Shown piece after piece: positions 5,264-54,829 of a stretch of 64,000 nucleotides of DNA. The DNA is from Lytechinus pictus (taxonomy: Eukaryota). The position numbers and the translations under genes are program-made. The stretch spans positions 5,208,001-5,272,000 of the forward strand of contig NC_087247.1 of assembly GCF_037042905.1 (NCBI RefSeq), in the 5' to 3' direction. Position 1 is the first letter of the stretch. Each line of letters begins with the position of its first letter. The notes under the pieces were generated by a model. That model made no database searches. It was not told the DNA's origin and was given only the letters and a program-made list of their open reading frames with translations.

Positions 5264-7376
5264 ATGAATAGATCATGGCTCTTCTTGGTCGTCATTGTGG
5301 CGATGGTGGCAGGTGTGTTTTCTGCTCCAGGTAAGAAATTATATTTTTTCGGTTTTAGAACTAGAACAAAACAAAATCCAAATAACAAAATAGCTTTAAA
5401 TAAATTGTGGTAGAAGGAAACGCGGTGCTTGTACTTTGGTTGTGCATTTTTTAACTTTAAATGAATGATGGAAAATTGACCAAGATAATTGATCGAGTAT
5501 AAGCAATTACTGCTGATTAGAATAAGATGGTAGTTTATCATTGATTTGATTATAAATTTTGTAACTATGATGTGCCAATAAAAATGAATGGATCACAAAT
5601 TTCGTGTGAAGCTTTCAACTTGTTGCTGAATTCTTATTTTGGGATTACCTTGCAGCGGAGAGAACGCGGAGAAGCAGCAGCAGCAGCAGTGAGGAGTCTG
5701 ATGCGGGATGCGATTGCGGCGATGGAGGGGACTGCGAACGCGATTGCGGCGACGGAGGAGGTGGCGACTGCGATGGTGGTGATGGTGATTGTGGAGATGG
5801 TGGTTGCGATGGTGGTGACGGTGGCGACTGCGGAGATGGGGGAGATGGTGACTGTGGCGGAGACTGTGGTACGGATGGCTGCGATGGTGATGGAAATTGT
5901 GGCGACGGCGATGGGGGCTGCGATGGCGGTGATTGCGGGGATGGTGGGGACGGTGATTGCGATGGAGGTTGCAATGGGGGTGACGGAGACTGCGGCGATG
6001 GTTGCGGCGATGGAGACAGTTCAAGCTCCTCCAGTAGCAGCAGCGAAGAGGAGAGCGGCGATTGCGAAGTTGACTGCGGTGCTGATGGTGGGGAGGCTGG
6101 CGGCGAGGTCCAGACCGTTTCTGTTCCTGCACCGATCCCAGTTCCACAGGCTCCAGAAATTCATTACCAAGTAGTTGAAAAGCCAATCTACATTCCGGTG
6201 CCTGTCCCTGCTGATGAGGAAGAGGATGATGAGGAAGATGATGGTGATGATGATGAGGGTAATGACGATGACGAAGGAGGAGATGATGGTGGTGATGATG
6301 ACGGTGATGCCGGAGATGATGGTGGAGATGATACAGGTGATGATGGTGGTGATGATGACGGTGACGACGATGATGGCAATGACGATGACGATTGTGGTAT
6401 GAACGGAGATAATGTTGGGTGCGGAGGAATAAAGACAGCTGGTGGGGAAGGTAAGTTGAACATCTGGAAAGATTTTTTTATCTAAAACATGCAATTATAA
6501 AATAATCATTCTGTATAAGTAGTAAATTCGCAGAACATCTCTAACGATTATTATTCCTATTTTCATGATAATGGGAATGCTTCCATAATTTTAGACGTAT
6601 TACCCTAGCTCCTTTTTTTTCTGGCGACTTTTTAGCTCTCGTTCAAATGTTCTTTCATTTGGCACCAAATACATGAGTAGAGAGTTGCAAAAGTAGTTTA
6701 ATGTTTTTCCAAAAGAACATTGCTTTAGCTTCGGGACTCGAACCATGCATGTGCTCCATACTCCGAAGGATTCAAGATAATCCAAGATAATCACTCTTGC
6801 TCTCATTTAATACAATTTGTTTTTAAAAAGAAATAAAACTTCTGAATAAGTAATGTCTTTTAATCATTCAGGTGTGAATGTCTGCACGACATGTCCATCT
6901 TTCATCTCTCGTACTCATTCTGTCTGTGGATCTGACGGTGCCACCTACGGAAATCTATGTGAGCTAAGAGAGTCGGCATGCAGGAGAAACGACAAAAACC
7001 TTAAGGTTATCAGCGAGGGTAAATGCAACGGTAAATATAATCAAGTTAAAAAAAGTCAAATCTGTAATGATCTATGCAAAGTAATATAAAAAGGGTATAC
7101 AATATGAATATTGTTGCCAAATATTGAGTAAGTATTTTTTTTTACAAGTCTCCAAACTCCAAAAGACTCCAAAAGAAACCTCGCACCAGGGAGTTGGGTG
7201 TTCTAACTCCCAACTTCCTGCTCGCACATGGGAAACGTAACGTTATTGCGGGACAATTGGAGTATGGAGAGAACATTGGTGTAATAGATTGCATGGTTCT
7301 GTTCATTTGAATGATGGTTTATAATCATTTTTATCTTTCATTATTTACAGGCAGTCTTGTAAAGCGCACCCACTGA
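5264..7376 (+). CDS. Cluster gene 1: secreted acidic Gly/Asp/Cys-rich protein with C-terminal Kazal domain (~348 aa)
   Basis: Coding exons 5264-5330 (MNRSWLFLVVIVAMVAGVFSAP), 5656-6450 (AERTRRSSSSSSEESD, GDC repeats, SSSSSSSSSEEE, PQAPEIHYQVVEKPIYIPVPVP, Asp/Gly tract), 6872-7030 (Kazal CTTCPSFISRTHSVCGSDGATYGNLCELRESAC...C) and 7351-7376 (GSLVKRTH*). All introns GT-AG and phase 1; total 1047 nt, open; AATAAA at 7811. Confidence 0.88.
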
Positions 7377-9014
7377 ATGCTGCTTCATGGCCGGCCCGAA
7401 ATACCAAGGCATGTCTTTCTATCTGATCGTATAATGGATGGAAGCAGTGATATTTATTTGTTTATTTATTCATTTATTTATGCCCTGTTTACAGACACAC
7501 CATTCCAATATGGAACTAATCACAACAAATCCTAGACAAATCAACCAACATATCTATAAGATTTGAACTCGATTATATTATATGTTAATTTCTTTGATAA
7601 TGATTCGAATGGATTTATGTGTCCTTTTCTACGGCAAGCTCTAACAAATACTTCGTATTATTTGATTGTCTTTATCTACCTCCATGCAATTTGTTTTTAC
7701 GTAATTTTTGACAAATCGATATCTTCTGTAACATAGTAATCGCTTATTTTGGTGATCAATTCTTTATCAATGTATTTTTTTATTTATTGAATCTTGTTAT
7801 TCTTTTAAAAAATAAATCAATTCATACGTCACATTATTGCTTCTTGATGGTTTGCATTATTTGTCATTCGTTTTCTTAAAAAGATTGTCAGGTCAAAATC
7901 AGAGAGAAAACAAAATGCGTGTGGGAGTGAGTGTGTGTGTATGAGGGTTGGTGAGTGTGTGTAAGAGCGAGAGAAACACAGAGAGAGAATGGAATGAGGA
8001 TGGAGAAAGAAAGAGCAAAAAGTGATAGGGGAGAATAGAAAGAGAGAGAGAGAGGGAGAGAGATGAAGACATAACTTAGAACTGATGAGCGTTTCATGAA
8101 AGGTCTTGTCGGACATTTTATCCGACAAGTCCTGATTTATCCGACAGTTACCATAGTAACAGTGCCTCCCAGCCAATCAAAATCTAAGTTGTCAGATCTG
8201 ATAACTTGTCAGACAAAAATGTTGATGAAAGAGTAAGAGAGAGATTGTGAGAGGGATTTTTTTTTAATTTGTTACTATTAACTGTATGACGTCACGTACA
8301 TGAAGGCAAATCACCACGCAATCATTCATGATAATATTATATATCCAGAGTTATCATAACATCAAAACACATCCCCAGAAATATCATTTTTCTATTATTT
8401 TGTTGTTGTTTTACTATCGACAAGACCACAATAATGTATTGGGTTGATGGGGGTATATCAACATGATCAATGTATGATGCATGTAAATATACTGAAATGT
8501 AATTAATGCTACGATTACAAATACTGTTCTTACGAATAACCCGTTCTTGCGAATTTCCCTTTTCTATGAGTTCAGGAATCTGTGTTTTAGTTAATCGCTG
8601 AACCCTGAAAACCAGGGAAAAGGAAAAAGCCAATCTATTAGTCATTGAAGAATATATCCTACAGAGATTTATTTTGTTTTTCGGAAAATGTGAATCATTG
8701 GTGGTGGAGGCACTAACAAAGAGGGCACTTTTTGAAGAATAAGCAAAACCAAGGGGAAAATTTCCACTTTGAGACGCCAATATGAACTGCGGAAATATGA
8801 TATATATTGTACAATGAAAACCATTCATGATAATTATGAATCTATATAAATAGGAAATATTAAATTTTTAATTCATTTACAGACTCCATTCATATGGCAT
8901 GAATATTTTGTTTTAAAATATATACAATGATAACATAAACAAATATATTCATAACTGTATGTCGTATAAATCAGTAATACATCAATACATATTTCAAATT
9001 ATTATAGAGATATA

Positions 9015-53834: not shown

Positions 53835-53983
53835 CATGGCAGTCTGTACCTTTAGGTCATTAGCTCGGCATTGGGCAAACAAGGACAAGGAAGCGAGGTA
53901 GAGTTATAGCTTTTAGTCAGCATATTTGGGGAATACTTTGTTTTCAGGGTAGAGCATCACTAACGGAGGAGAACACCATCACG

Positions 53984-54829
53984 ATGATCCGGGAAATACA
54001 GGTACTCGTAATCTACATCTTGTTGGCGGGACTTACTTCAGCTAAACCGGGTAAGGCTTTATTAATACGCATAGTGAGTAAGAAAGGTGACATGAGTGCT
54101 GCTGCTACTTCTATTACTTCTCCTTCCAACTTATGCTTTATCTTCTTCTTTTTCTTCAGCTGCATCATCACAATCATGACAATCAGCAACACCACCAAAC
54201 CATCGTCATCAGCAGAAGCACCCTCCTTTTCTCTCTCTTCTTGTCATTTCCTTCTCCTAGTCTTCAGTTTTTCACCATAGCGTTGAATTACTAATTTGAA
54301 TGTTATATTTATATAAATAAACATGTATCATTTATTGCAAACCCCTCCAACGAGATTTGACCACAATTACACCTTTATTTTCCACACAGTTGGCAGACAA
54401 AGAAGGAGCAGCAGCAGCAGCAGCAGCAGCAGTATTAGTGAAAGCAGCAGTAGCAGTGAAGAGTGTGGGGTCGGAGGCGGAGGAATCGGTGGATGTGGGG
54501 TTGGATTTGCTGCGGGAGGACTGAGTGTCGGTGAACATGGTGAAGGCGGCGACGGGGTTGGTGCCGGAGGTGGAGGTGGCGCTGGAGATGGTGAGGGAGG
54601 GGCTGGTGCTGCTGGTGATGGCGATGGTGCCGGTGGTGGTGATGGTGCTGGTGGAGATGGTGGCGGTGCTGGTGGTGCCGATGGTGGTGGCGATGGTGAT
54701 GGTGGGGATGGCGGTGACGGTGGACATGGATTTGGCGGTGATTTCGGCAGAGATGGTGCCGGTGTTCTTGGTGGATATGATGGTTTTGGTGGCTTTGCTG
54801 GATTGGATAGTTGGAATTTTGGGAAATAA
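53984..54829 (+). CDS. Cluster gene 6: small secreted poly-Ser/Gly/Asp protein (~168 aa)
   Basis: Exons 53984-54050 (MIREIQVLVIYILLAGLTSAKP) and 54390-54829 (VGRQRRSSSSSSSSSISESSSSSEECG ... GFGGFAGLDSWNFGK*). Phase 1, 507 nt. Confidence 0.87.

Follow-up and report, generated by a model that had tools for sequence, protein, structure and literature searches.

The 64,000 nucleotides of Lytechinus pictus DNA analyzed here (contig NC_087247.1, positions 5,208,001 to 5,272,000 of the forward strand; this whole stretch is called the window) contain six of the genome's eight paralogous genes for secreted, hyper-acidic, Gly/Asp/Cys-rich proteins, as found by stop-to-stop translation and genome search, and all eight genes carry the motif R-x-R-R at the same position at the start of their large exon. 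Comparison of the copies confirms that conservation of this motif goes beyond chance or shared descent, and the invariant Arg at P4, P2 and P1, combined with a variable P3, is by its pattern the signature of an R-X-R-R recognition site. The family, whose members are intrinsically disordered as judged by composition, is read here as tooth-matrix-type proteins of the sea urchin. Their putative nature as convertase-processed acidic matrix proteins of the Fam20C type is partly supported at the level of sequence.

Occurrence of the R-x-R-R motif and selection on it

The six long open frames of the window, in which Gly, Asp, Cys, Ser and Glu predominate, carry RTRR at 5661-5672 (gene 1), RTRR at 16102-16113 (gene 2), RYRR at 27438-27449 (gene 3), RIRR at 38531-38520 on the minus strand (gene 4), RVRR at 51082-51093 (gene 5) and RQRR at 54395-54406 (gene 6), and in the two paralogues that lie elsewhere in the genome the motif reads RIRR and RYRR. 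An earlier reading made from the letters of the window alone (the sequence-only reading) had listed the same six motifs at the start of the large exons, and the position from which it started, 5656, is the first base of the large exon of gene 1. The motif is followed by S6EE in gene 1, S8EE in gene 2, S3EE in gene 3, SGD in gene 4, DSGE in gene 5 and S9-I-S-E-S5-EE in gene 6, and six of the eight copies go on with three to nine Ser and then EE or ED. The Ser runs ending in EE that had been reported for genes 1, 2, 3 and 6, the internal Ser clusters of genes 1-4 and the double DSGE of gene 5 were all recovered by translation.

Selection on the amino acids of the motif is well supported by the comparison of the copies, because the Arg codons have turned over by synonymous changes only, P3 is free, synonymous sites are saturated and Arg is nearly absent elsewhere. 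Across the eight copies P3 is T, T, Y, I, V, Q, I and Y (five residues), seven of the P1' residues are Ser and the eighth is Asp, and the flanks are rich in Gly, Ser and Asp. In a seven-sequence alignment the only invariant columns other than Gly, Cys or Asp are R2, R4 and R5, and the remaining invariant columns are some Gly, one Asp and two Cys. P4 is encoded by AGA, CGT or AGG, P2 by CGG, CGA, CGC, AGG or AGA, and P1 by AGA, AGG, CGA or CGG, so that the three Arg positions have undergone no fewer than 10 silent codon changes without a single replacement. Because no more than 4/9 of the single-base changes in Arg codons are silent, simple arithmetic puts the neutral chance of ten successive silent changes at about 3e-4 or less. 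Beyond the motif there are only 9 Arg in about 2,100 residues, and in gene 2, gene 4 and the seventh copy the three Arg of the motif are the only ones of the large exon. The age of the family can be judged from the Kazal exons that five members carry: between paralogues, the proportion of synonymous differences (pS) is 0.54-0.83, corresponding to a synonymous rate (dS) of about 1 to saturation, and the nonsynonymous rate (dN) is 0.18-0.35, well below dS. Because their synonymous sites are saturated, the paralogues are old by this measure.

These codons also bear on whether the conserved object might be the nucleotide sequence, for example an exonic splicing enhancer that is rich in purines and directly follows the acceptor, or whether the motif might have been inherited without function. 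The distance from the 3' splice site to the motif is 5-11 nt, and genes 1, 2, 5 and 6 are indeed purine-rich there, their AGA/AGG codons preceding repeats of AGC and GAG; however, gene 3 (CGT TAT CGC CGA) and gene 4 (CGT ATT CGA CGG) keep the Arg residues with pyrimidine-containing codons, and functionless inheritance is opposed by the retention of 24/24 Arg against saturated synonymous sites. Both explanations are very improbable, and the splicing enhancer was rejected as the conserved object on the codon usage of genes 3 and 4.

Gene models, Kazal exons and the conserved core

All eight paralogues share a common design, in which a first exon of 67 nt ends in a phase-1 intron and is followed by the large exon. 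In the six genes of the window exon 1 starts with ATG, consists of 22 codons plus one base, has a GT donor and lies 340-580 nt upstream of the large exon, whose AG acceptor is likewise in phase 1; R-x-R-R begins 1-3 codons later. The exon joint of gene 1 thus reads ...S-A-P/A-E-R-T-R-R-S-S-S... (the slash marks the joint). In all eight genes the peptide of exon 1 has 22 residues, with a basic n-region, a hydrophobic core of 14-16 residues and small residues at -3 and -1; these signal peptides were judged by rule (n-region, hydrophobic core, -3/-1) and not by a predictor. The features of the six genes are as follows.

Gene 1, exon 1: 5264..5330, plus strand; signal peptide MNRSWLFLVVIVAMVAGVFSAP plus 1 base, GT donor, phase 1.
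Gene 1, large exon: 5656..6450, plus strand; A-E-RTRR 5661-5672, S6EE 5673-5696, then a Gly/Asp/Cys-rich region, an internal S9EEE cluster 6012-6053, the core QAPEIHYQVVEKPIYIPVP 6147-6203 and an Asp/Gly-rich tail.
Gene 1, large-exon donor: 6451, plus strand; phase 1.
Gene 1, exon 3: 6872..7030, plus strand; Kazal domain (Pfam Kazal_2, E 4.6e-9).
Gene 1, last exon: 7351..7376, plus strand; GSLVKRTH, then stop.
Gene 2, exon 1: 15560..15626, plus strand; signal peptide MSRSWLFIAVILLMAVFAFSAP.
Gene 2, large exon: 16097..17023, plus strand; A-E-RTRR 16102-16113, S8EE 16114-16143, internal (SD)n-SSSEEDE cluster 16600-16677, core 16741-16797.
Gene 2, Kazal exon: 17389..17565, plus strand.
Gene 3, exon 1: 26954..27020, plus strand; signal peptide MGRLGLSIAAMLCLVAIAASLP.
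Gene 3, large exon: 27433..28434, plus strand; R-E-RYRR 27438-27449, SSSEE 27450-27464, internal S8EED cluster 27840-27896, degenerate core 28035-28091.
Gene 3, Kazal exon: 29290..29457, plus strand.
Gene 4, exon 1: 38891..38957, minus strand; signal peptide MSRSWLTLAILFLVATLVVAAP.
Gene 4, large exon: 37626..38536, minus strand, with the acceptor ambiguous by 3 nt; (K)D-RIRR 38531-38520, then SGDCGG and no Ser run, internal SSGSGSSSSSGSSGEED cluster 38309-38253, core 38123-38067, end ...ACCQ and stop, no Kazal exon.
Gene 5, exon 1: 50433..50499, plus strand; signal peptide MNRIWIALTILLIVSTLATCAP.
Gene 5, large exon: 51080..52374, plus strand; G-RVRR 51082-51093, DSGE 51094-51105, a second SSSDSGE within 51505-51576, core 51733-51783, 60% Gly, no Kazal exon.
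Gene 6, exon 1: 53984..54050, plus strand; signal peptide MIREIQVLVIYILLAGLTSAKP.
Gene 6, large exon: 54390..54829, plus strand; V-G-RQRR 54395-54406, S9-I-S-E-S5-EE 54407-54463, core absent.

The large exons contain 28-60% Gly and 5-29% Asp, with 5-8% Cys except in genes 5 and 6, and acidic residues outnumber basic ones by 57-119 to 4-6 in the acid-rich members, 31 to 12 in the Gly-rich gene 5 and 21 to 5 in the short gene 6. Their sole non-repetitive element is QAPEIHYEVVEKPIYIPVPVP, of which VVEKPIYIPVPVP is the conserved core; it is degenerate in gene 3 and missing from the short and divergent gene 6. In genes 1-5 the internal Ser clusters, which end in EE, ED or GE, occupy one aligned position directly before the core. 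Genes 4 and 5 stop within the large exon after a short Cys-rich tail. No Cys-rich third exon resembling the tail of gene 4 was found after genes 1-3, in which the large exons have good phase-1 donors and the actual third exon, also of phase 1, encodes a six-Cys Kazal domain.

The Kazal_2 match of gene 1 scores 36.7 bits against a Pfam gathering cut-off of 22.8, and the six-Cys Kazal pattern was also located after genes 2 and 3 and after both copies outside the window, so that five of the eight genes have a C-terminal Kazal exon. The seventh copy, found by a genome search with the core about 43 kb past the window, reads SNAAP/A-E-RIRR-S8-ED across its exon joint, and the eighth, found on another contig by a search with the Kazal exon, reads SSTP/A-H-L-RYRR-S6-EE. 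Downstream of the window, at 5.32-5.52 Mb, the minus strand carries at least seven further Kazal exons.

Gene 1 is transcribed. An RNA contig of public run X5 links 6448 to 6870 (large exon to Kazal exon), and the joint from 7028/7029 to 7350 (Kazal exon to last exon) is present in runs X2, X5 and X7, which supports the four-exon model 5264-5330, 5656-6450, 6872-7030 and 7351-7376; six RNA runs each contain only 6-10% of the words of gene 1, and at this thin coverage the tissue cannot be named from the reads. The three gaps of N (17881-18020, 22732-22904 and 32559-32720) fall outside all six large exons and signal-peptide exons. The presumed last small exon of gene 2 is unplaced, as the CAT-repeat after its Kazal exon runs into the gap at 17881-18020. 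This long CAT/CAC trinucleotide repeat (His/Ile-coding) occupies 17570-17880, from right after the Kazal exon up to the gap, and probably caused the gap in the assembly.

The core suggests a link between the family and the tooth matrix of Strongylocentrotus purpuratus, and the papers on that tooth spoke against an assignment of the genes to a mollusc shell-matrix family, which was considered and dropped. GLEAN3_10589/Sp-Hypp_1925 (LOC585716), which was found in tooth powder and in the intact tooth matrix, is Gly-, Pro- and Asp-rich with a pI of about 4 (4.1) (PMC2614417, PMC2830187); it is a phosphoprotein (PMC2830187) with the single identified peptide VIEKPIYIPVSVPR (PMC2614417 supplement). 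This one S. purpuratus peptide, from which alone the likeness in sequence is known, matches the family core of gene 1 at 11/14 positions, and the composition matches as well; the N-terminus of GLEAN3_10589, and any R-x-R-R motif or Kazal exon that it may have, would lie outside its one public peptide. The exact peptide PIYIPVSVPR of S. purpuratus was absent from the L. pictus genome in a degenerate DNA pattern search, which points to related but different urchin species, and full-text searches found no literature on Sp-Hypp_1925 beyond proteomic lists.

Proposed maturation and its alternatives

Maturation of these proteins probably, though by no means securely, proceeds constitutively, with a convertase trimming a short pro-piece and so exposing a phosphoserine tip. 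The signal peptide from the 67-nt exon would direct each protein into the endoplasmic reticulum, and the signal peptidase would, by the -3/-1 rule, most likely cut just before A-P (S-L-P, A-K-P or T-P in three copies), leaving a pro-piece of 7-9 residues such as APAERTRR. A furin-type proprotein convertase of the late Golgi would then cut after R-x-R-R, and the mature chain would begin with the Ser run ending in EE or ED in six of the eight proteins, with SGD in gene 4 and with DSGE in gene 5. A Golgi kinase of the Fam20C type would seed phosphorylation at S-x-E, and the Ser residues upstream would follow as S-x-pS. The outcome would be a statherin- or casein-like phosphoseryl tip on a calcium-binding acidic chain that could be cross-linked through Cys, the remainder of which would comprise a probably disulfide-cross-linked Gly/Asp/Cys region, a hydrophobic/Pro core and often a Kazal module. 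The convertase would also define exactly where the chain starts, next to a poly-Ser run within which signal peptidase, acting by itself, would have many equivalent sites to choose from.

R-X-[K/R]-R is the consensus of the proprotein convertases, and Ser and Asp at P1' occur in known furin substrates. Among the eight copies a signal peptide and R-X-[K/R]-R are each found in 8/8, P1' is non-hydrophobic and the flanks are disordered. The consensus of Fam20C is S-x-E/pS, and S-x-E sites are present in all members, confined to the N-terminal and internal Ser clusters. Both types of enzyme are encoded in the genome, with at least five P-domain loci over the cut-off for the convertases (Pfam P_proprotein, PF01483) and three Fam20 loci (Pfam Fam20C, PF06702), a count in which Fam20C and Fam20B orthologues are not separated. 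Poly-Ser stretches, too, are phosphorylated by Fam20C (PMC7948968). The tooth matrix of S. purpuratus also contains a Fam20C-like protein and an S-x-E-phosphorylated phosphodontin (PMC2830187). Full-text literature searches found no paper tying a convertase site to urchin matrix proteins.

Several points weigh against constitutive maturation. The gene models, the motif, the selection on it and the enzyme genes are read from the DNA, whereas we infer the signal-peptidase site, the cleavage, the phosphorylation of Ser and the binding of mineral. The joint between exons 1 and 2 of gene 1 is without RNA support, read coverage being thin, and the conservation of the motif is that among the paralogues of one genome. 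Dense phosphorylation at P1'-P3' could hinder the convertase. The proteomic studies published on urchins relied on trypsin; this enzyme itself cleaves behind these Arg residues and therefore cannot reveal the native N-terminus. P2 is Arg in 8/8 copies although furin also takes Lys, so that the constraint is tighter than the consensus requires and could point to another, Arg-specific role, and genes 4 and 5 retain the motif without a Ser run. Finally, the only known phosphosite of GLEAN3_10589, PVpSVPR, lies in the core and is not of the S-x-E type (PMC2830187).

Some of these points would suit an R-x-R-R that is retained uncut, its basic patch forming with the phosphoserine/Glu cluster a zwitterionic N-terminal module that binds mineral, sulfated glycans or a matrix protein. 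The presence of Arg, never Lys, at all three positions of the eight copies is tighter than a furin site demands, and the lack of Lys at P2 fits such a module slightly better than it fits a furin site; the motif is, moreover, the sole basic cluster of otherwise Arg-free chains, and the two genes that hold it without a Ser run are also in line with a role of its own. In statherin, DpSpSEE and KFLRR act jointly. However, an electrostatic patch should permit Lys, shifted spacing and a variable number of basic residues, whereas the observed spacing is exact and P3 is free. A similar motif recurs as an exon-initial spacer in a polyprotein-like neighbouring gene (described below), and a distance of 7-9 residues from the signal peptide is what short pro-pieces, for example that of proalbumin (RGVFRR), typically show. 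Retention of the uncut motif is thus unlikely.

The sequence-only reading had gone further and proposed a protease-gated mineral-binding switch, in which removal of a basic propeptide exposes a polyphosphoserine N-terminus. Such a switch would call for a regulated, rate-limiting cleavage, for example an extracellular one or one restricted to a compartment, with the basic pro-piece masking the phosphoserine tip until the protein reaches the site of mineralization. The switch shares all the sequence facts of constitutive maturation; the pro-piece, with a charge of +3 to +4, directly adjoins the Ser-EE cluster, and the protease-inhibitor domain of the Kazal type in five members might suggest that control of proteases is a theme of the family. 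Yet cleavage by furin-type enzymes and phosphorylation by Fam20C are normally constitutive events of the Golgi and trans-Golgi network (TGN), three Arg cannot offset the acidic residues, which number 57-119 in the acid-rich members and 21-31 in genes 5 and 6, and what supports the switch carries no bearing on timing. The Kazal P1 residue, where it was read, is Ser, Ala or Thr (C-P-S/A/T-F) and never Arg, which argues against inhibition of a convertase, and the Kazal domain was considered unlikely as a convertase inhibitor on this ground. The switch itself appears quite unlikely. What stands of the proposal is its sequence-level part in full, namely a convertase consensus that is selected, lies 7-9 residues past the likely signal-peptidase site and precedes the only S-x-E sites of the proteins, in a genome that encodes the enzymes; plain precursor maturation is the more likely interpretation of these facts than protease gating.

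Neighbouring genes and comparison with known systems

A polyprotein-like gene about 27 kb beyond the window (5298500-5307000) has a signal-peptide exon of the same type, MSRFWMML...AAP. Its first acidic exon opens with A-E-R-L-R-R followed by D-D-S-S, and seven more exons each open with G-[DG]-R-K-[KR]-R followed by D-E, the first two residues being G-D in all but one of them, which has G-G; the peptide D-E-G-D-L-[EG]-D-D-S-S-P-E, with its S-P-E site of the Fam20C type, is present in six of these seven. The repeated basic spacers at the starts of its exons are hard to explain except by processing. A phosphodontin-like gene (63069-64000 and beyond) has the signal-peptide exon MDRLFVIVLFVAMATITTAAP, of the same 67-nt phase-1 type, about 20 repeats of the KEISSGEGEEPK type and a poly-Asp tail; it differs from the family in having no R-x-R-R, and its mature end opens with VNQSTSVEVK.... 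In gene 7 (57658-58980) the phase-1 signal-peptide exon MKWQLSLSAIFLLVTMVFIVTAVP precedes a hyperacidic exon that is rich in Asp and Cys and opens with VDKKNALNEPQLLSSGE; no convertase-type motif was found in it, and its mature end opens with VDKKNALNEP.... Because these two genes share the exon type yet lack the motif, the basic motif tracks an immediately Ser-rich or acidic N-terminus and not the shared signal-peptide exon in general. The shared exon type suggests that the whole cluster has one ancestral signal-peptide exon in common.

Phosphodontin and the Kazal/Ala-Pro-rich proteins of S. purpuratus resemble the family in genomic neighbourhood, S-x-E sites, acidity and Kazal modules. The S. 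purpuratus Kazal proteins described in 2008 have, however, an N-terminal Kazal domain and are Ala/Pro-rich, whereas here the Kazal domain is C-terminal and the chain is Gly/Asp/Cys-rich.

The intervals between the genes contain repeats and open frames of other kinds. Between genes 4 and 5 a minisatellite of 8.3 kb (41042-49368; 22-bp unit GTCCTTAATATAAGAGAAAAAC, about 376 copies, 70% match) accounts for the strong skew of A over T there. Between genes 1 and 2 an open frame of 274 aa (9410-10234, minus strand) resembles a Tc1/mariner transposase, with a helix-turn-helix N-terminus and a DDE-type C-terminal part, and two open frames at 20876-22372 (minus strand), which adjoin the gap at 22732-22904, resemble fragments of a non-LTR reverse transcriptase (YINDLP..FADD).

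Homology searches gave no relatives of the acidic exons. They matched no Pfam family, a word-indexed protein search with the core of gene 4 found nothing, and the ESM Atlas gave no usable match. A profile of seven paralogues run against 1.84 billion representative proteins, a library evidently without echinoderm relatives and whose null result is therefore silent on conservation, retrieved only three unrelated low-complexity D/G/N repeats (E 2-5e-4).

Acidic matrix proteins are thought to govern the place and manner of formation of calcite and its amorphous precursor; outside vertebrates, the means by which secreting cells prevent such proteins from doing harm are poorly understood. The family provides a clean and testable case, with one invariant convertase motif exactly ahead of the only Fam20C-type sites in eight paralogues, and supplies gene models and a genomic context for a tooth-matrix protein of which proteomic lists had offered just a single peptide. 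Even if the motif were uncut, the family would still define an unusual Arg-specific N-terminal module. The occurrence of one signal-peptide exon in otherwise unrelated acidic genes parallels the SCPP cluster of vertebrates.

The SCPP genes are alike in forming a tandem cluster and in having a signal-peptide exon of their own, followed by an exon with S-x-E sites, and in SPARC-L, the parent gene of the SCPPs, a Kazal module is combined with an acidic region that bears S-x-E sites (PMC9122587). They differ in that their introns are in phase 0 and the mineral is calcium phosphate, as opposed to phase-1 introns and calcite in the urchin. SCPPs lack a convertase site and need nothing but signal peptidase to expose the N-terminus, whereas the urchin family has R-x-R-R. 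Membership in the SCPP family is defined by descent from SPARC-L1, phase-0 introns throughout and one exon that encodes the signal peptide plus two residues, and the phase-1 introns found here do not conform to this definition. The likeness is read as convergence, not membership, because of the phase-1 introns and the lack of sequence similarity. It is conceivable, though rather unlikely, that an SCPP-like echinoid toolkit arose independently and that, in one branch of it, a convertase unmasks a polyphosphoserine anchor, switching on the binding of mineral or amorphous calcium carbonate late in secretion; to the same small degree, such a toolkit might combine the shared signal-peptide exon with fast-evolving acidic S-x-E exons, with or without Kazal modules, and with a convertase step that is absent in vertebrates.

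For constitutive maturation the closest parallels lie among proteins of several kinds. Statherin and the caseins are, like the family, secreted, disordered and acidic, and their mineral-binding centre is a run of phosphoserines ending in Glu-Glu (SSSEE, DSSEE); in statherin this centre is at the very N-terminus, as is proposed here. Proalbumin (RGVFRR) and pro-PTH likewise have a pro-piece of 6-9 residues that ends in basic residues and is cut in the TGN, with Asp or Ser at P1', and differ in being folded or hormonal rather than biomineral matrix proteins. In FGF23, Tagliabracci et al. are said to have described in 2014 a furin-type R-x-x-R that abuts a Fam20C S-x-E serine at P1' (RHTR/SAE), and to our knowledge this is the one well-studied furin site abutting a Fam20C serine. 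There, too, a kinase and a convertase act on the same few residues; however, FGF23 is a hormone that is cut in mid-chain, with an interplay through an O-glycosylated Thr, whereas the urchin site is N-terminal, precedes poly-Ser and has T at P3 only in genes 1 and 2. Among biomineral proteins, Pif of the pearl oyster is an acidic matrix precursor that was reportedly found by Suzuki et al. in 2009 to be cut at a basic site of the Kex2/furin type; it differs in that the cut falls in mid-chain and yields two functional halves, in having no poly-Ser tip and in showing no homology to the urchin family.

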